Origin: Paraphysomonas bandaiensis
Taxonomy: Eukaryota; Protista; Chrysophyceae
Assembly (NCBI GenBank): GCA_965644295.1
Contig: CBFFRP010000015.1
Location: forward strand, 55,926 to 119,925
Length of the DNA stretch: 64,000 nucleotides
Direction: 5' to 3'
Numbering within the stretch: position 1 is the stretch's first letter; each line of letters opens with the position of its first letter. The position numbers and the translations under genes are program-made. The notes beneath the pieces are model-generated. The model was given only the letters and a program-made list of their open reading frames with translations, did no database searches and was not told where the DNA came from. Shown here piece by piece: positions 24,617 through 39,856 of the stretch.

Positions 24617-27600
24617 TTAGCGTAAACGTTGTGACAACATGTTAGACAGTTTACTTTCTTCTTTCTCCGCATTATCATACTCAGCATCTAAGGCCGTAAG
24701 TGCCTGGCTTAACTTTCTATTGGACATCATTGACGACAGCGCTTGTTTCAGTAGCCCCGCAAGGTGCCTATGAGCATACGTCTGACACTGACTCAGTGCC
24801 CACCGGATTGTTTCATCTTCTGTCAGATAGAGTGCTTTGATGTACATGTCCACGTACTGTCTTCCCCGGGGTGGGCGACACACATGGCGCGAATCCAATC
24901 CAGTGTGAAGCGCAGATACGTCCATTGTCATGGAAGCCCTTCCCTCCGTGCTGCATTTGCGCACACGAGATAACCCCTCTAAGACAGCATCGAATGCTGC
25001 CTGGCATATCTCTAGCCACACCTTCAGTAAAATGCGTTAACTAGTAGAGACGTCACTGATTTCTATATACCTGTTCTCTCACTAAGGTGGATGCCTCAGC
25101 AAACTCATCGCCGGCTTCCATGTATTCCCAAACCTGTGTATGTTGGTTATGGTTTCTAAATACAGCACGATACCAGCTTACATCTATGCAATTGTCGATT
25201 AGTGTATCGACCCACTCGTGTGGTTCCTCCCGCATCTTCTTTTGGTCCCACCCTGACTGCTCCAGCATAATACTCACTATCTACACAACAAGAATATTCA
25301 AATACATCATTAACACTATAAGTGCGCAGCACCTCGTTTTGTTTTACAAGATCGGGGCACATCGCCCGATAAACCAGAGAACGGAGCTGTCCAGATATCT
25401 GCTGGAAATCCGATATGTGATTCTCTGAGGTCTGCTTATGGGCCTCCGGTAGTAAGCTCAAAACCTTTGGTTTGATCTCTCCAAGTATCTGTAGGTATTG
25501 TTAGCCGCAGAAGATCATGCATATTACCAATCACCTTTGCAGCAAACCAGCAGCTCTCTGCAGCCACAACCCTTTCATTGAGTGCATTAAATGAAGAGGG
25601 CTCCGGAAATTGTACAGCGTGCGGTGGCTGCAAGTTCTTGAGCACATCGGATGAGCAGAATATATTAGTGAATTGTACACCATCCTCCGCCCAGAGTCCG
25701 CTATTACTACCCGGTCCACCGAGTTGCCCAGGAGAGCGCCCCCCTACCCCTACTCCACTTAGCAGACCTCGGCTGCCGGAAGAAGAGAGAGAGAAGAGAA
25801 ACTGCATACGATGCGCCAGGGCCTGCGGAAAATATTTACAAACGGATAAGTCAGAATAAATACTGGCACCTCAAAGTCCTTAGCTTGTAGAGGCGGAGGT
25901 GCGATGCTGCGCGGGAGATTTTTCGTGAATAGGCGTGACCTTTCTTCGGAAGATACAAATCCGATGAAAACTGCACAAAGATAAAAATCAAATAGCTGAC
26001 ATAGGCCATTAAATATCTCGGGGGCGGCCGCAGGCATCAACTGCATCATATGGAGATATCGCCCACTTAATTTGGCGAGCCCATGCAATGAAGCCTGAGT
26101 AACAACCATAGCTGATGTCTGCTGCTGGGCACGTCGGCTGAGTGGAACCGCTGTATCATCTTCCAACAGCTTTGACAAAGCCTCCATTAGTAAATTCACC
26201 TCATGCCCAGTGCCGTTAACTTGGTCTCCTGTCGATGATCCTGATACTTGTCTTTTAATTCCATCCACTTTCTCGCTAACAATTTCATCGCCATCCGCGT
26301 CCTCATCTGCTCCAGCAGTCATAAAGTGAAGGGGATTGCCAGAACTGTGGAAGGACATCAGAATACTTTCTTCGAGGCCCTTATCTGCATCGACGTTCTC
26401 AATTTCACTGCGTGCCTCAGTATCCACACTGGTATTTGTATACTTAGCAGCAAGGCTAGACCGATTGGCTGCAAGTATTAAGTTCCGCCTCTGCGCAGCT
26501 TCCATCGCCTCGTTTACCATTCCTCTAATCCTGATGCGTCCACCTTCAACGACCCCTCCTCCAGCAGACTGGTGATGATGCTTGAGAGCGTACATCTTGA
26601 TGATTCCAAGAATGCCACCAACCTCCCCAAGTTGAATTGGAACACTCCGCCAGGGCTCAGACTCCAACAACTGCTGTAAGTATCTGAAGGACTCTAAATG
26701 AATGCTGTTCGCGTATTCCACGGACTTCAGTGCAACGACATGCTTCAATCCGCGACTCTCAGCGTTACAAAATTCCCGCCCAAGTTTTATGATTGTATCC
26801 AACGCCCAGAGCATAGAAGCAAAATCTTCCAGAGGAATAGCCGCAGATGGAGAGATTGCATGTAATAAATCTACAATAGCACGTTCAACTTCCTCCCAAA
26901 GTATAAAGCGGCAGGCTACAAGAGATTGATTCGCATCTGTGAGTCTGGCACTCTGCAAGCGGAGATGCCGAACGTCTTCCGGCGATAACGCACCACCCTC
27001 GCCGTCAGCAACGATATCAGAGCTGATAATTGAGTCTCTAATAACGTCCCCTTCCTGCGATCGCCGTTGTAGCCTGTGCTGATGGTGCCTCTCTGTGGAT
27101 TCAGCACGCCTGCGGCCGCCCTCCTCGTCATCTTCCTCTTCACTGTCAGTGTCAGAGAAATCCTGCTCCCCGTGATCTATAGGGCAGCGGTGCAGGTACC
27201 GCATGTCGTTATTGCGCTCATCAAATGGGCTCTTGTGCCACTGGGTAATGAGATAATTGGTATGAATGACAGAGGCCAACATCTCACAACCCCGAACTAC
27301 GCAAGGTACAACTATACCCGGAGTGATCCGCTCGTACAGCTCCTCACGCGACAACTCGGGAAGGTCCACCATTTGAAGATTGGCATCTGCCTGACCTTTG
27401 GCAGCTGCAGCATTGGCATGTGCGTACATGAGCTCCAGCACTGTGGAGTGCATGCAGGCCCCTATATCTGCCATCTGGTAACGCTGAATTCGCCTCGCAA
27501 GCCCCTCCATACACCCGTCCTCATCGAATACAACCTCCGCGTCTCCATCTCCTGCCTCCCCTGCCCCCGCCCGGGCTACCACTCTTACTCCCAGGCTCTC

Positions 27601-28818
27601 TTGCATATGGTCAAGTAGTAAATAAGATCGCACGATTCCTTCATATTCTGGTGCTGCGAAACGTCTGGAAGCCAACCGGAAGAGGGCTTTATCGGTTTTG
27701 TGTCGTAGTGCGGGCAGCATACGTTGGACCCCCTCTCCATAGCCTTGAACACTCTTCAGACAGTAGTAACTGTCATCCTGCATTGTCATCAAGACTCGAT
27801 AGCTGCTCTCTGCAGCACGCCCAACATCTCCAATTTTAACACTCTGTAACATTTGTTCATACAGACCACGTACAAACTGAAGCCTCTGCAGCGAGGAATA
27901 CACTTGAGTCAGGTTCTCCTTACGCCGTTGAAGCCGTGTTATACCTAATGTACCCGTAACAATCAACTGTTTGCCAGATTCCAGTTTGCGGCGACTATTT
28001 GTAAGCTGAATGCCAGTGCGCGCGAGGTCCATGTCAATGGCGTGCACATCCCGCATGCACGACATGAGATCACTGTAGTTAAGAGAAATCATGTCAGCCA
28101 GCTGGCTGAGAACCATATCCTTATCAGTATCTGTCTCCTCAATCGTTGCCATGAATCTGTCCGTGAGCCCTTCATCCTCCCACTGCGATATCTCCATTAA
28201 CTGCTTCTCAGTGGGGTCGAAGTCAGGGGAGAAGAATCCTTCATGTAGACCCGCTATAACCTCCTCAGGAGTCTTACTCGCTTTGATACCCATGTATTCA
28301 ACACCTGAGGCGAGGGCTTTTTGCCAAGCTTCCTTTTCTGTTCCATCTGCTCCACCATGATTACTCCCACTTCCTTCTGAAGAAGTGCTGCGGGACATAT
28401 AATTTGAACCTCTGATTACTTTTGTTAAGACAATATTTTGTAAATACAACGCGGGCCGTACCCAATAGACTTGCGTCGAGTTAATCCTGCCGCTGCATCT
28501 CTGCATCGCTCCTCCAATATATCCTATACATATATTAATCCTTTCCTCTAATAATCCATTAGACTCACTGGGTCTTGATATAAATTCTTCATAATATCAT
28601 CGAGAGAGGGGTCACCCGCTCTGTTTAGTCTGTATATATCTAATTAACGTGACAAACAGACTATTGTCCCCTTACCCCAACCGAGTGGCCCATCCTCCAT
28701 CAGTGGCATATGTTGCATCTGATATCACACTGGCATTATCATCCCCGTGATGTCCTGCTTCTTTAATAGAGGGGGATTTTTTAGAGGTAAAATTGAGGAA
28801 ACTGCTCTTCATCGCCAT
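24617..28818 (-). CDS. VPS50: Syndetin / VPS50 (EARP complex subunit), multi-exon
   Basis: Vps54_N-like N-terminal coiled coil; LESEPWRSVP; IFNGLCQLFDFYLCAVF; LNERVVAAES; C-terminal LEGLSRVRKCSTEGRASMTMD and YVDMYIKALYL, characteristic of syndetin. Confidence 0.88.
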
Positions 28819-28976: not shown

Positions 28977-29571
28977 GTATGTATGTATGTATGTATGTAT
29001 GTATGTATGTATGTATGTATGTATGTATGTATGTATGTATGTATGTATGTATGTATGTATGTATGTATGTATGTATGTATGTATGTATGTATGTATGTAT
29101 GTATGTATGTATGTATGTATGTATGTATGTATGTATGTATGTATGTATGTATGTATGTATGTATGTATGTATGTATGTATGTATGTATGTATGTATGTAT
29201 GTATGTATGTATGTATGTATGTATGTATGTATGTATGTATGTATGTATGTATGTATGTATGTATGTATGTATGTATGTATGTATGTATGTATGTATGTAT
29301 GTATGTATGTATGTATGTATGTATGTATGTATGTATGTATGTATGTATGTATGTATGTATGTATGTATGTATGTATGTATGTATGTATGTATGTATGTAT
29401 GTATGTATGTATGTATGTATGTATGTATGTATGTATGTATGTATGTATGTATGTATGTATGTATGTATGTATGTATGTATGTATGTATGTATGTATGTAT
29501 GTATGTATGTATGTATGTATGTATGTATGTATGTATGTATGTATGTATGTATGTATGTATGTATATATATA

Positions 29572-29602
<31 letters not shown>

Positions 29603-30004
29603 TGTATGTATGTATGTATGTATGTATGTATGTATGTATGTATGTATGTATGTATGTATGTATGTATGTATGTATGTATGTATGTATGTATGTATGTATG
29701 TATGTATGTATGTATGTATGTATGTATGTATGTATGTATGTATGTATGTATGTATGTATGTATGTATGTATGTATGTATGTATGTATGTATGTATGTATG
29801 TATGTATGTATGTATGTATGTATGTATGTACGTATGTACGTATGTATGTATGTATGTATGTATGTATGTATGTATGTATGTATGTATGTATGTATGTATG
29901 TATGTATGTATGTATGTATGTATGTATGTATGTATGTATGTATGTATGTATGTATGTATGTATGTATGTATGTATGTATGTATGTATGTATGTATGTATG
30001 TATG
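28977..30004. repeat. ~1.03-kb (TATG)n microsatellite
   Basis: Nearly perfect tetranucleotide array, with one AT-only interruption at ~29563-29573 and two TACG variants at ~29829-29840. Confidence 0.98.
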
Positions 30005-30343
30005 TTGTATTTCGGTGTATTCCACAAAAAAGGACAACTATACTTCAATGATCTTTGTAGTTGTATATATGTACGATAATACAGCAGTGGCCAGCCACAC
30101 AATGATGAGTGTATTTCCCTACTCCTGTATACCCATATACCGTATGTATCCATCTCGCCGCACTGTATATGTGTCAAGGAGCATATATGAATACACACAC
30201 CCGCACATATCTAACTGAAAATTACATATAGAATTCCCCCTAAAGCCTCTATTCACCACCAAACTCTTCACTTACCTACATAAGCGAGGTACACATCCAT
30301 CCAGCACCTGACAGAGACCAAGGAAGTATTCGTCGTTATTCCA

Positions 30344-32262
30344 ATGTCTGAAACACTCCCTAAAAAGAGGTGAGAGAGGAGATAGATGTGTATATGTAGT
30401 AATGGTCTGTAGGTTAAGAAGAGAGGGTAATAGCCGATACAATGACGAGCAAGAGAAAATGAGAACCTCACCATTTGTGAAAGAGAAAGTTAATCCTATC
30501 CGGGTGTTGCCGAATATGCCAGGTAGGGAGTTGCTGTGTAGTCATCGGAGGGTTGATCTATATGGATATGTGTGTATAGGATTTAGCGCATTAACGAAAG
30601 GAGAGGCCAAGCACGATTCCATAGAGATAGAAAAGACGTCGTACTTATCTGTGGTATGTGGTGATATACTGTGTTATTTATTCGCTTATACTTCATAAGG
30701 ATGCTACTGATTCCGAGGGCGAGGAGGATTTCTCTCACGACAAGGGGTTTATACTTCGGTCCATGCGCCCTCCCTGTGCCCCAGAGTCGACACTTTCCAA
30801 GAAGAAGTGTCGATACTTTCACTGGGCTCTCCACCCTGAATCCATAGATGGAGATTTAGGACAGTATCGTGAGGGGGTGGATCGCTTGAACGGGGAGTTG
30901 GCGTTACTTGAAGGAGATAAGGACCGTTGGGAACGCGGAGTGGGCTTGGCGCGTGCAGGGCTTGCCGATCTCCATCGGGCTGTAGGTGATGGTCTTTCAG
31001 TAGTGCGAGCGGATGGACTACATCTTAGACAGGCATTGCTGCAGGAACTTGGTCTATCTGAGGGTGATTGGGACGCGGAGAGGGTCGCAGGGGCATTGTC
31101 GGGACTACAGCGTGAAGTAGGACGCGTAGTAGGATCGGAGGAAAGCATGGATGGGAGTGACGTGGCGAGCGCTTTGCTACTACTACAGCGTGCTGCGGGC
31201 ACTTTGTCGGAAGTATCGCTCGAAAAATACCGAGTAGAAGAGGAGAGTGCCGTTGTCTGTCGACAGTGGGTTCGGGGATGTGTGGAGAAAGAAGGGGATG
31301 GTACTGCTGCCAGTGTTGTTGCCGGAGCGGTTGCAGGGGTATCACCACATTCTGGTTGTAGGGAGGGCAGTGCAGAGGGGGCAGTGCTGAAGAGGTTTCC
31401 GATTCCTCAACCCACTCTGTTGGAGATGCTGAGGAATCCAGTGCTAAATCCTCCGACGATGTCTATGGACACTGCGATTCCTTCACCACCTGTCAGTAGC
31501 GGCACCAATAGCAAACCATCCCGCAAAAGGAAAGGAGGCACTACAGAGCATGTGACACCGATGCTGGCAACAGCCCGTCAGCGTACCCCGCGAGCACCTG
31601 TACCACTGTTGTTAAGTCCATTCAGCGCTCAGGAAGATGGGTTTGTTGGAGCATTTCCAGTTCCCCCTGAGCCTCCTGTCTCTGAAGTACGAGGGCCTTG
31701 TGATCCACGAGCTACAGCTCTATCTTCCTCGCAGTTGCCTGTTTTTTTGAAACAAGGTGAAGAGGGGGGGGAGCAGCTAACGAGGCTGAGGGGAGCAGTG
31801 TTGCGGTCAGAACGTATACTCGGCGCGCTGGAGAAAGAGAAGCAAGAATGGGAAGCACAGGTGGGTAAGAGTGCGGAATATATAATATCGTGATAGGGTG
31901 TACAGGTGACACAGAGTCAAGCCAGTTTGCGCAACGCACAAGATGCGCTGGAGGGGGTATTGCTGTTGAGTGAGCAGCAGAATATGCAGTTCCAAGAAGA
32001 CAACGAGAAACTGGCGGCGGCTCGGGAAGAGGGAAGACATCCTGGGAAATCTACTCCAGGAAAGGTGAAGAAATCTATGGGCAACACAGGGTCAGACGTC
32101 GACGGTTTCAATGATACAGAAGGCGTTTCTTTTTCCCAAGGGTCGATTGCTTCCACTGCTGCTGATGAAGATCCATCTCAGCCTGATGCTTCTGCAACTT
32201 CTCTTCCACCCCCTGGGAAGAAGACCGTTGCGCCACGCAGAGTAAAGCGCAGAAGCTTGTAG
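30344..32262 (+). CDS. Hypothetical coiled-coil protein (about 5 exons)
   Basis: MSETLPKKR/LRREG... start, short GT-AG introns, long coding-like ORF 30658-31893 and terminal exon ending TAG at 32262. No family recognised. Confidence 0.7.
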
Positions 32263-34250: not shown

Positions 34251-34370
34251 TATAGGTAGGTATGTATGTATGTATGTATGTATGTATGTATGTATGTATG
34301 TATGTATGTATGTATGTATGTATGTATGCATGTATGTATGTATGTATGTATGTATGTATGTATGTATGTA
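34251..34370. repeat. (TATG)n tract, left flank of the Mutator-like element
   Basis: Direct reading; ends ...tatgtatgta immediately before GGGACC. Confidence 0.95.
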
Positions 34371-34616
34371 GGGACCGGTGCCGAGTGTGAGGCACTTTAG
34401 GGGGGTTTTCACGGCTCGGTGCCAAGTGTGAGGAATTTGATGCAAATATCCAGGTTTTTGAAAATTAGTTTTAGAGAGGGGGTTTTCCGTGTACTCTGTA
34501 TATATATGTATATATAGCTACTGCTGATATATAGATATCCAAGTGTGGTCATAAGGTATGAGGTACATTATGTATATATTGAATATAGCATATACATGAT
34601 ATTAACAGTACATAGG

Positions 34617-35698
34617 ATCATAGAATCCAAATGTCAGCCAATGCATAAATATCTCACAGAAGCTGATAGGTGGCAATTGTACCTTGCTATCGAGTCGGGA
34701 CATATGCTTTATGACTGGAAGAGCGACAATATTGTCGAGCAAATATTTTCATGGTGCAGGGACGAGAGATTCATGAATCATTACATGTTTATTAAGAAGT
34801 TTGTCGCCAGAATATTCGAAGCTAATGCCGATAGATACACGGAGCTTTCAGCATTGAATACTGTACTCCATAGACAAGCTCTAGAACATTTCAATGTAAT
34901 TGTACAAATGTTAAATGTGTTCTATATTGATGCTATGATTACTCTTGTTATAACATCCTAATTAATCATTGCAAAATGTCTTGGACTTGCCAATACAGTG
35001 TGCAATGTGATTAAATCGAATGTTTGTAGAAAGTACAGAGCAAAGCGAGACATTGCCTTATGGAGGTGCACATCTTGGATCCCAGAAGTGGTCGGGGAAA
35101 CTGGAATACCTTGCAAGGATGCAGTGAACATACTGAAAGCGTTGTATCCGAATTGCACGATGCCGGACAGTCTATTTTCGGAATCTTACTTTCATAAGAA
35201 CTGTTTTACCACGTCAGTGAAAGATATGTTTACCGTCGTGCCTCAATTGTTGGGGCATATTCCATCCACTTTGGAAGTAGACAATCGCTTGCACTCAAAA
35301 GTATTTAGGCCAATCAGGGCCCCTATTTTAAATGAAGGAGGCTGCAAATCATCAAGGAGCTCGAAGCGATTCAGAAGCACCGGAGAAACTTCCAGCAGGT
35401 ATTTATATTGCCTTGCTGTGTGAGATCGGTGTTCGTAGTAACATCATGCGTATGCCTCATCTTAACCATATACAACAGTGCTTCTACACAACCGACCTCT
35501 CGGAATAGACAACAGCGACAGTGCCCCGACTGCCACCAGTGGCTCTCACGAAAAACTAAACATCCTTCGACCGCATGTCAAAGCTACTGTCGTCGGAATG
35601 GTATCGCCCCGCCTGATGTCATTCACTGTGGTTATCTTGAGGATGCCACGGAGTTTGATATCATTGAGGAGGCTGATGTATCGGATTCACCCGCATAG
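34617..35698 (+). pseudogene. C-terminal fragment of a MULE/MuDR-type transposase (spliced, degenerate)
   Basis: YDWKSDNIVEQIFSWCRDER resembles the MULE T(S/N)NxxESxN..R block carrying the catalytic E. CTSW...GIPCKDA is a decayed SWIM finger (CxC...GIPCxH). C-terminal RQCPDCHQWLSRKTKHPSTAC is a knuckle-like motif. The N-terminal DNA-binding domain and first two Asp were not found. Confidence 0.65.
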
Positions 35699-35815
35699 TA
35701 TCCGTCGTGTGAGTGCTATGTCCTAGGAGATGTACTGGTTTGTTGTTATCTAAACTTTTTTTTCTTGGCTTAGTTATGTTCTTTTGTGTTTTTAATTTGC
35801 TTTTTGGATTTCGAG

Positions 35816-36607
35816 CAGGGATAGGGAACAATATATTGCAATACTATTGTTAGATAGCGTTCCATCAATACTATTGATGGAATTTTTAAACCGGTTCTAC
35901 AATACAATTACAATATATTGCAATATATTGTCAACGTATTGCAATGTATTAGTATGACTAATCAGTAGGTAAATACATCCGTAGATTTCATTTTTAGTAT
36001 TACTCATTAAGATCACATGACAACCAAACCAACTGCTGCTTATATAGCTACTAAAAATCCACCTCGTCCTCATCCTCTGAGCCATCATCGGTGAGGTCAA
36101 CTTCACCATATTCATCCACAGAATTAATTGAAATATGTTAGTATCCGGCCATAACTGTCGAATAGCTTTCAGAAACAACAGCATATTAGGTAGGATGGAA
36201 ACTTTTGCGCAACACTGATATAATATGTTCAGCTGGGATGACCAGACGTTCCCATGTATTGGAAGTACATACCAGGGCCAGGCAACCGTTAATGACTCGT
36301 GGATCTGTACGTTTCTTAATTTTTTGAGCTGACTGGAGATTTTTAGTCGCATAGTCAACATCAGCTTCACTATCCGTTGTAGTGTTGTAATCAATTTCTC
36401 GGTTACTTATATCCATTTTGCACCCTACAGTTGAGAATCTTCTCTTATATGACTATCATAATATTGATTGCAATATATTGCAATAGTATTGTGAGCTCTT
36501 TTTAACAGAAACACTATTGATGGAATATTTGACCAGTCCACCAATCAATATATTTTACAATATATTGTACAATGAATTGCAATACAATATATTGTTCCCT
36601 ATCCCTG
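35816..36607. mobile_element. Non-autonomous hAT-type element (792 bp) nested in the Mutator-like element
   Basis: Perfect 23-bp TIR CAGGGATAGGGAACAATATATTG; perfect 8-bp TSD ATTTCGAG at 35808-35815 and 36608-36615; subterminal CAATA/TATTG repeats. An 8-bp TSD and CAGGG ends are hAT hallmarks. Confidence 0.9.
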
Positions 36608-36749
36608 ATTTCGAGTATTCAATTTCTTATTCGAATTTATTCTTACAATTAATAAAATCAATTTTCAGATAATAATGTTTTCAAAGTTAAACACCCTTGC
36701 ATGATGTTAGACTCACTTCTTGATATCATATCAACGATCAAGCACATAT

Positions 36750-37545
36750 ATGTTACATGTATATACAGGTAGGTATGATGTGCCTTAATATGGCTTGCTG
36801 TATTAGTGCAGAGTGCAGATACGACGTAGGGCAGGGGCAGCTAGAGCCGGACCGAAAGTAGGGGCAGGATCAGCGCTCTTGAATGTGGATGGGACAGGGG
36901 CAGCTAGAGCCGGACCGAAAGTAGGGGCATGATCAGCGCTCTTGAATGTGGATGGGACAGGGGAAGCAGCCCTAGTTGGAGCAGAAACTACAGTATCAAT
37001 GCTACATGCAGATATGTGTTATGAGCGATAAGTTAATCATTTTTATTAGCTTACAGCAGTATCATTCCCTTGTCTGTGAGGCTGTAGGATTCGTAGAATA
37101 CATAGAAATCTGTTCCATCTTTTTACGTACGAAGTCATGGTTCGTCTTTACTAAGACTTCCTCAGCTACTAGATTGAGGAGGATTTCTGATACACTCCCA
37201 TCAGATAGGCCAATGTTATTGGCGATACGCTCCCGCACTTTCTTGATGCCGGGAGGTTTGCCATTGAAAAGTGGTAAGTGTTTAATAATGTCCAATACTT
37301 GAACAACCAACCTCAGGTCATACGTCTATAAGAGGTGTAACAATTTAGGAAGGGATAGTAGCAATGAAGAACATACCTGTAAAACATCCATCTTTCGGTA
37401 TTGTTTGTTAATCTTACCCGCCGCTTATGAATTGTGAAGAATAGTGAGCAAGTCATGAGTGTAGTAGAACGGAGAGTGTGAACAAGTAAGTCCCTTGATG
37501 TTCTGGTCTGGTTGTCCAAAGGTCTTATGACCACACTTGGATATC
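36750..37545 (-). pseudogene. Second, convergently oriented gene or gene fragment inside the Mutator-like element (unknown product)
   Basis: Exon-like blocks separated by a GT-AG intron (~37328-37376): ...TERWMFY / YDLRLVVQVLDIIKHLPLFNGKPPGIKKVRERIANNIG... and a downstream open block IDTVVSAPTRAAS(PVPSTFKSADxAPTFGPALAA)x2. Frame continuity is not fully resolved. Confidence 0.45.
36832..36963. repeat. 63-bp tandem duplication (2 copies, 21 codons on the minus strand)
   Basis: ctagagccggaccgaaagtaggggca at 36841 and 36904; one mismatch between units. Confidence 0.9.
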
Positions 37546-37740
37546 TATATATCAGCAGTATATATACATATACAGAGTACACGGAAAACCCCCTCTCAAA
37601 AACTAATTTTCAAAAACCTGGATATTTGCATCAAATGCCTCGCACTTGGCACCGAGCCGTGAAAACCCCCTAAAATGCCTCACACTTGGCACCGAGCCGT
37701 GAAAACCCCCCTAAAGTGCCTCACACTCGGCACCGGTCCC

Positions 37741-38090
37741 TATGTATGTATGTATGTATGTATGTATGTATGTATGTATGTATGTATGTATGTATGTATG
37801 TATGTATGTATGTATGTATGTATGTATGTATGTATGTATGTATGTATGTATGTATGTATGTATGTATGTATGTATGTATGTATGTATGTATGTATGTATG
37901 TATGTATGTATGTATGTATGTATGTATGTATGTATGTATGTATGTATGTATGTATGTATGTATGTATGTATGTATGTATGTATGTATGTATGATGTATGT
38001 AGGTATGTATGTATGTATGTATGTATATATGTAGGTAGGTAGGTACGTATACATGTATATATGTAGGTACTGTAGGTAGGTAGGTATATA
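37741..38090. repeat. (TATG)n tract, right flank of the Mutator-like element, decaying into TAGG/TATA variants
   Basis: Direct reading; perfect to ~37992. Confidence 0.95.
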
Positions 38091-38179
38091 AGTATATTTA
38101 TTTGCGTTAAGGTTTCTGGTTCGTATCTTTTAGAAGTATATATACATGTATATATCGTCGTATACACAATCACTTATCC

Positions 38180-39856
38180 ATGCTTCATAAGTCTCCAACC
38201 CCTCCTCCATTATCAACAGGAGCACTACGAAGACAGCTCGGATTCTTAGATGGTGTGTGTGTGATAGTTAGTATTATGATAGGTAGCGGTATATTTGCCA
38301 GTCCAGGAGTGGCTCTAGAGCGGTCTGGATCACCAGGAGCCTCTCTCATTGCCTGGTGTGTGGCAGGTATATACCCATATGGTTCATGTATCTATCTGAT
38401 GGGTCTATAGGTGGGGTAGTGGTGATAGCTGCATTGTGTTATGCGGAGTTAGGAGCGATGATGCCTACTGCTGGAGGGGACTATGAATACCTCAAGAGAG
38501 CATATGGGGAGTGGGCATCTTTTTCATTTGGTTGGTATTTCTTTTGGATTGCTAAACCGGGATCCCAAGCTATCATAGCGACAGTATTTGGAAATTATAT
38601 TGTGCGCGTGTTTACCGGTCTTGATGGGGATAATGCTAGTGCATGGGCCAGCAAAGTAGCCTCCGTTGGCCTCATACTAGCACTTACTGGACTAAACTGC
38701 ATGGGAGTACGGGAGTCGTCTTGGGCGATCAATGCGCTCACAGTTTGTAAGATCGCTCTTATTTTGTGCGTTTTCGTGGCCGGCATGGTTTACCTTGGCT
38801 CTGACACCTCAACTCTCAAGTACTGTTTCATTGTATTGCTTCAGTTTGGATACGTAGAAAGTATTGACATGTGACTTTTACTGCTATGGTTGAATATGTA
38901 TACATATATACGCACTATGCATGTAGACTACTAGTTTATATTAGTGTTGATAATTGACGGCCAACCTTTGTCTGATTGATGGTTTATGATGTAGGGATAA
39001 CCTGTATCCATCTGAAGCCTTTACTGGAACCCATCCTGTAGGATTAGGTACTGCCATAGTAGCATGTCTCTGGGCGTATGATGGATGGGCAGACCTCAGT
39101 TTCCTCGCGGAGGAGTTGAGAGATTTCGAAAAGCGTCTCCCTCTTGCTATCATTACGGGTGTGGCGGGCGTGGCGTGCTGCTACGTGATGGCAAACATTG
39201 CCTATTTGAGCGTTCTGAGTAAGGATGATATCAAGGACTCGGATGCAGTGGCTATAGACCTTGGAAGGGATGTCGCAGGAGGGGGATTGGCAGCTGTGTT
39301 TGCTGCAGGAGTGGCTCTCTCTGCTGCAGGTGCGGCCAATGGTTCTATTCTCACTGGAGGCAGAGCTTTTTATGCAATTGCAAGGGCGGGGCAAGCACCA
39401 GGCTGGCTCTCACGACTTAATAGTGCGGGTGCCCCATGGACCTCCCTCCTTGCTCAGGCGTCTTGGGCCATCACTTTACTACTGTTGCCTGGGTCATCCT
39501 ATAGCACACTACTAGACTATGCAGGGCCAGCTGAGTGGCTCTTTTATGCGTTCACAGGGAGTGCTGTAATCGTCCTACGAAATAGGGAACCAGATTGTCC
39601 GAGGCCTTACAGGGTTCCCATGTATCCTCTTCCTCCTATATTGTTGGTTTTAACAGCAGCTTGTCTCGTGGGCAATAGCCTTTATCAGGCACCGTTATTT
39701 TGTTTCCTAGCCCTCTCGTTCATAGCACTCTCGCTACCGGCCAAGTGGGTTAGTGATTGGTGTGGACGTTGTCACAAACGAACTGAAGTGACTGACACTG
39801 AGACAGGAGCTTCTGAACCACTGCTAGTAAATGATACCAACAGTGATGTGTCATAG
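38180..39856 (+). CDS. APC-superfamily amino acid permease (LAT/SLC7-like, 3 exons)
   Basis: MIGSGIFASPG, ALCYAELGAMMPTAGGDYEYL, WAYDGWADL..AEEL and LRNREPDCPRPYRVP; multiple hydrophobic segments. Confidence 0.93.

Follow-up and report, generated by a model that had tools for sequence, protein, structure and literature searches.

Maize elements of the Mu/MuDR type carry long terminal inverted repeats (TIRs), produce 9-bp target-site duplications (TSDs), and prefer the 5' ends of genes and open chromatin; we know of no microsatellite preference in this group. Published descriptions of Mutator elements that do seek out microsatellites come so far from flowering plants and mostly concern (TA)n. 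In Medicago truncatula, 204 of 218 MuTAnT copies (94%) lie in perfect (TA)n (PMC4486113), and TAFT of maize and Micron of rice are cited as elements of the same kind (PMC4486113). The SaTar elements of guayule, rice, sorghum, and citrus are non-autonomous Mutator-like elements (MULEs), 62-95% of whose copies are flanked by microsatellites that are not always (TA)n, and their siblings in low-copy DNA bear 10-bp duplications (PMC5907723). The Mutator-derived Ac-mMITEs of pineapple, present in tens of thousands of copies, comprise a (TA)n-flanked class beside a class with 9/10-bp duplications, a pattern read by the authors as a damage-limiting strategy (PMC8449440). Tetranucleotide targets are found in other transposon classes, such as the Waldo non-long-terminal-repeat retrotransposons (ACAY) and the MINE-1 Helitrons (GAAA) (PMC3812793). 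Here we analyze a non-autonomous MULE of 3,370 bp at positions 34371-37740 of a 64,000-nucleotide stretch of contig CBFFRP010000015.1 (assembly GCA_965644295.1; hereafter the window), which sits in register within one same-strand (TATG)n array. Its behavior is of a kind known for MULEs but differs in the repeat, which is a tetranucleotide, and in the host, which is probably a chrysophyte.

We refer to the family of the window element as family A (terminus GGGACCGGTGCC) and to its sister family in the same genome as family B (terminus GAGCCCGGTGCC). A 14-nt terminus pattern was found at 27 places, compared with 0-1 for a control pattern; 20 of these places are true termini, which together with weaker matches define ∼17-18 loci of the two families. 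Perfect (TATG)n arrays hold 4 of ∼17 loci (∼22%), namely the window element (C15) and C394 from family A and C457 and C551 from family B. The differing internal structures and outer flanks of these four copies indicate that they are independent insertions. Two more loci are in related low-complexity DNA (C269 in a (TACC)n tract beside a (TACA)n array, and C69 in a TATG-like minisatellite), and all remaining loci are in ordinary DNA. When arrays are counted as perfect runs of at least 6 units (at least 24 nt; 143,270 pattern starts counted in 4-nt steps), they occupy ∼0.57 Mb, or 0.9% of the 62.6-Mb genome, which is unusually high for one tetranucleotide; their share of the window is 2.4%. The binomial probability that at least 4 of 17 loci fall in such arrays is 2e-5 at a background of 1%, 6e-4 at 2.4%, and 0.009 at a generous 5%.

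A family of hAT-type elements, one of which is nested in the window MULE, served as a control for survival and assembly effects on these counts. None of 21 inspected hAT-type copies is in an array, and 20 of the 21 have clean 8-bp duplications. Across the genome, a T-purine repeat precedes none of the 446 termini of this family, and an (AT)n-like run precedes one. Comparison of MULE with hAT-type insertions gives a Fisher P of 3e-9 when termini are counted and 2e-5 when loci are counted, showing that the enrichment is not general to transposons of this genome. Random MULE insertion, with chance strikes on abundant arrays, is made easier by their share of the genome and the window and by the location of most copies in ordinary DNA, but the above binomial probabilities, together with the hAT-type result, make an absence of preference very unlikely. 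Based on these results, the lineage formed by families A and B lands in (TATG)n arrays ∼20-fold above their genome share, and this preference is real.

The preference is nevertheless short of strict specificity, as about three quarters of the loci lie elsewhere. The sequence-only reading had proposed that the lineage specifically targets the (TATG)n repeat as a safe harbor; the bias toward arrays is borne out by the census and by the hAT-type control, whereas "specifically" is not, because tabulating the copies by flank and phase shows that the majority are not flanked by TATG and reside in ordinary sequence, where they have 10-bp duplications of the usual kind. A lineage dedicated to (TATG)n would account for the strong enrichment over background and for the register of insertion, which is common to both array copies within each family (TATGTATGTA in family A and ATGTATGTAT in family B). 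It is barely plausible, however, given the unrelated 10-bp duplications at the loci outside arrays and the presence in unique DNA of a relative from another organism.

At the window locus, the left flank terminates in TATGTATGTA and the right flank opens with the same sequence, so the register of the junctions is compatible with a duplication of 2, 6, or 10 bp; a fit of this kind would be expected 1 time in 4 by chance if the two flanks were independent arrays. Five other copies have 10-bp duplications: CTGAATATGT in C254, CTGTATATGT in C69, TAGGAAATTA in C463, TACCTACCTA in C269, and ATGTATGTAT in C551. In C260 and C378, 9 of the 10 bases match. A related 3,333-bp MULE in environmental contigs of another organism, which has the terminus GAGACCGGTGCC and encodes a SWIM transposase of 758-774 aa, is flanked by the 10-bp duplication CAATATCATA in unique DNA; it occupies one insertion site, beside an AAA-ATPase-like gene, in three samples. 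This single insertion bears on the TSD length and on the conserved terminus but says little about targeting. The duplications of the copies in unique DNA settle the choice at 10 bp, the length that the sequence-only reading had preferred. The same register would allow a 2-bp TA duplication made by a TA-targeting Tc1/mariner or Stowaway-type element, and the junctions do read TA/GGGACC...GGTCCC/TA (junctions marked by slashes). This superfamily can be ruled out, as sister copies and the related element have 10-bp duplications, those of the sister copies in unique DNA do not end in TA, and the transposase is of the MULE/SWIM type.

These observations allow the lineage to be compared with the plant elements. 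That no example had been described, as was initially supposed, is wrong in kind, because microsatellite-targeting MULEs are known in plants (PMC4486113, PMC5907723, PMC8449440), but a full-text literature search for MULEs with a tetranucleotide preference found nothing. SaTar is similar in that its members are MULEs with long TIRs that fall into two populations, one flanked by microsatellites and one with 10-bp duplications in low-copy DNA. It differs in the fraction of copies flanked by microsatellites (62-95% versus ∼22% here), in the end-to-end modular stacking of its elements, and in junctions that are often inconsistent with a 10-bp TSD; neither the stacking nor such junctions are seen at the four array loci. 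The present lineage, in contrast, has junctions that a simple 10-bp cut would explain, a single tetranucleotide as its target, an autonomous partner, and a host outside the plants. MuTAnT resembles the present lineage in having a mudrA-like autonomous member with short derivatives, microsatellite insertions, and exceptions with 9-bp duplications (PMC4486113), although its insertions are nearly exclusively in (TA)n, whereas a minority of copies are in (TATG)n here. The Ac-mMITEs are likewise Mutator-derived, with a microsatellite-flanked class that coexists with a 9/10-bp-duplication class, but they are plant elements of very high copy number at a dinucleotide. Waldo and MINE-1 share the tetranucleotide type of target (ACAT is TATG on the other strand) but belong to unrelated classes with other mechanisms, which are an APE endonuclease with reverse transcription and rolling-circle replication, respectively. 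Thus, the lineage shows enrichment in a microsatellite and has siblings with TSDs of the 9-10-bp class, whereas microsatellite-flanked copies are not the majority of its members.

Inspection of the window confirmed the layout first described from the sequence, including the size of the element, its long TIRs, the same-strand (TATG)n flanks, and the junction register. The element begins with GGGACCGGTGCC and ends with GGCACCGGTCCC, and its TIR arms of ∼190 bp are 94-99% complementary, with one extra 40-bp subterminal unit on the right (Table 1). Across the lineage, TIRs are ∼185-217 bp long in family A and ∼125 bp in family B and share the conserved terminus GRGMCCGGTGCC. Each half-array is degenerate at its outer edge, with TAGG-type units, and perfect at its inner edge, which fits one array that was split.

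Table 1. Features at and around the MULE insertion, in window coordinates
Feature	Position	Strand	Remarks
Left half of (TATG)n array	34256-34370	.	28.8 units; outer edge degenerate (TAGG-type), inner edge perfect
Left copy of inferred 10-bp TSD, TATGTATGTA	34361-34370	.	Length taken from sister copies in unique DNA
Left TIR	34371-34555	+	Starts GGGACCGGTGCC; two 40-bp subterminal units
Transposase remnant, three open reading frame pieces	34545-35698	+	C-terminal third of protein
Nested hAT-type non-autonomous element	35816-36607	+	TIR CAGGGATAGGGAAC; 8-bp duplication ATTTCGAG at 35808-35815 and 36608-36615
63-bp tandem repeat, 2.2 units	36832-36967	.	Part of family-A backbone
82-aa open reading frame	37062-37310	-	Family-A copies only; gene status unsupported
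Right TIR	37524-37740	-	Three 40-bp subterminal units
Right copy of inferred 10-bp TSD, TATGTATGTA	37741-37750	.	
Right half of (TATG)n array	37741-38095	.	88.8 units; degenerates outward, ∼100 bp upstream of amino-acid permease gene
Amino-acid permease gene (PF13520)	38356-39856	+	Context, directly downstream of array

A Pfam search with the open reading frames (ORFs) of the window element gave no direct match, so the MULE identity of the element is shown via family B. The ORF at 34545-34961 shares 52% identity with the C-terminal third of the family-B transposase and the ORF at 34998-35423 shares 66%, and the DNA of the two families is ∼70% identical over the coding part. The remnant retains an SDNIVEQIF block, the PCKDA second half of a SWIM finger, and a CCHC-like knuckle. 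The SDNIVEQIF block aligns with SNNIIES in relatives, and we take it to be the motif that bears the third catalytic residue in Mutator/IS256 enzymes. Thus, of the motifs that had been read in this fragment, the catalytic-E block and the knuckle are present and the SWIM motif is there by half. What the remnant lacks is the N-terminal DNA-binding domain, the two regions with the catalytic D residues, and the CxC half of SWIM; the window element is therefore a deletion derivative dependent on transposase made elsewhere. The remnant has a match of 100% identity in read-contig runs X1, X3, and X4 and is absent from run X6.

The fuller copies and their relatives support the assignment. The 332-aa core ORF of family B has 194 relatives, 14 of them at E <1e-30, and the full-length ones align over ∼320 aa at E values of 1e-35 to 1e-42. 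Alone, this core ORF scores 15.2 bits against PF10551 (MULE), which is below the cut-off, but the threshold is passed by relatives P0008 (38.6 bits), P0013 (36.9), P0006 (32.3), and P0017 (28.8). SWIM (PF04434) is matched above its cut-off of 19.6 bits by a family-B exon (21.1 bits) and by relatives, whose scores reach 37.5 bits. Both domains are recovered above the Pfam thresholds in full-length relatives of 680-985 aa, one of which, P0012, passes PF00872 (Transposase_mut; 22.1 bits against a cut-off of 21). An N-terminal zinc finger of the PF03108 type scores 13.5 bits (E 0.056) in exon 1 of family B, below the cut-off of 25. The nearest clusters obtained with a protein language model are all MULE/SWIM families, from diatoms, oomycetes, and plants. 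Judged by this homology and by the 10-bp TSDs, the original assignment holds, and the window element is a non-autonomous MULE.

Family B also provides a candidate source of transposase. Three of its copies (C269:24574-28390, C254, and C69), each 3,817-3,818 bp long, are 99.97% identical and carry what is apparently an intact multi-exon transposase gene. A transcript-derived protein of 506 aa from MMETSP1103, labeled Paraphysomonas, matches the family-B exons at 90-100% identity and reveals the splicing; this match indicates that the family-B transposase is expressed. The family looks recently active. The label on this transcript is also the ground on which the stramenopile host proposed at the outset is probably right. 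Marine metagenome contigs of the family-B transposase are 98-99.7% identical and contain internal sequence only, with neither ends nor flanks. At C260:19012-21963, a family-B copy has inserted into a TIR fragment of a sibling, within its subterminal region, and is flanked by the duplication AACAT(C/A)CAGC; this is a self-nested insertion.

Taken together, the data probably reflect insertion of a family-A non-autonomous MULE into a pre-existing (TATG)n array, by a lineage that is biased toward arrays and uses ordinary sites too. The target would have been the perfect core of one array of ∼460 bp just upstream of the amino-acid permease gene. With transposase supplied in trans, the MULE would have entered by the usual route, in which the target is cut with a 10-bp stagger and the gaps are then repaired, and TATGTATGTA would thereby have been duplicated. 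The hAT-type element inserted into the MULE later. The lineage has two insertion outcomes, one at ordinary sites with unique 10-bp duplications and the other in (TATG)n arrays, and the enrichment would arise from choice at insertion rather than from later survival. Pyrimidines and purines alternate strictly along (TATG)n, and the choice may come from a liking of the transposase for such DNA or from open chromatin at promoter-proximal arrays. The position of arrays near promoters makes open chromatin a live alternative to recognition of sequence or structure. The preference of Mu/MuDR for 5' ends and open chromatin would fit such arrays.

A different origin of the bias, after insertion, would be better survival of copies in arrays that act as neutral harbors, or growth of the arrays from a TATG-like duplication during gap repair, as proposed for the maize TAFT elements. 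Flanking repeats longer than the empty sites in maize and Medicago (PMC5907723; PMC4486113 Table 1) speak for such growth, as do the eroded ends that abut the array in two array copies, a sign that arrays are dynamic, and the unique-site duplications CTGTATATGT and CTGAATATGT, which could serve as seeds. However, a general survival advantage should enrich the hAT-type element too, and no enrichment of it is seen. Growth from a duplication is also at odds with element-free arrays of up to 1 kb, such as the one at 28977-30010, with the degenerate outer and perfect inner edges of the half-arrays, and with C551, where one flank has only ∼24 bp of array. We therefore regard growth or survival after insertion as a possible but weaker reading, and an unlikely one.

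Several points weigh against insertion by an array-biased lineage. There are only ∼17-18 loci and only 4 in perfect arrays, and in 2 of these 4 one end is truncated or eroded, leaving one readable junction each. Matching registers within each family would arise by chance ∼1 time in 16, and the register differs in the family-B copy within the (TACC)n array. The ∼1% background is based on perfect runs only, and the figure for the window is higher, at 2.4%. Read contigs, which skip arrays, revealed neither an empty site nor an excision, and the MULE identity of the window ORFs comes through a sister family. Finally, the non-array MULE sites are not significantly more TATG-like (P = 0.18) or pyrimidine-purine alternating (P = 0.26) than hAT-type sites. 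This lack of a graded preference points to a two-mode pattern, as in the plant SaTar and pineapple elements. More tentatively, a chrysophyte MULE lineage may have acquired a second insertion mode into (TATG)n with a family-specific register, and the arrays may be a shared landing pad for several unrelated transposon classes.

Other features of the window and the genome were recorded in the course of this work. A perfect, element-free (GTAT)259 array of 1,034 bp at 28977-30010 lies between a Vps54-like gene (25759-28506, minus strand) and plus-strand ORFs that begin near 30402. The element nested at 35816-36607 is assigned to the hAT type on the basis of short TIRs beginning with CAG and its 8-bp duplications (clean in 20 of 21 copies); its family has 446 exact termini in the genome, with copies that are 92-96% identical, and has very high read-contig depth in runs of three organisms. 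The 82-aa ORF of the window element is present only in the family-A copies C15, C394, and C442 and is open in all three, but its pN/pS of 0.5-0.65, a 4-bp indel relative to other copies, and weak matches to helix-turn-helix domains only leave an accessory gene at this position unsupported.

The only direct PF10551 match in the genome is a 974-aa ORF on C461, with a MULE domain at 38.8 bits, which is unrelated to families A and B. No TIRs were found within 10 kb of this ORF, which could be a domesticated gene or part of a different element; a 1.6-kb (ATAC)n array lies ∼400 bp upstream of it. The sequence GAGACCGGTGCCGAAGCTGTC, shared by C293, C372, C388, C396, C476, and C507 along with the same 70 nt upstream, is internal to another repeat family and was rejected as a MULE terminus. 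A metagenome scan with a degenerate 25-nt terminus pattern yielded 14 matches, none of them relevant: all fall in bacterial contigs of high GC content and are due to chance.

How Mutator elements come to lie in microsatellites is disputed, with a sequence-specific transposase, repair stuttering, and homologous recombination as the proposed mechanisms. The lineage described here is small and tractable; its transposase is apparently intact and is expressed, and its recent copies are nearly identical. Because its junctions can be explained by a simple 10-bp cut within a repeat with a period of 4, the register of insertion can be read, which a repeat with a period of 2 hardly allows, and choice by sequence, choice by chromatin, and later survival thereby become directly testable. 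The case also highlights that this genome bears an unusually heavy load of (TATG)n arrays close to promoters. If a second, (TATG)n-directed insertion mode does exist in this lineage, it would be the first non-plant and the first tetranucleotide example among Mutator elements.

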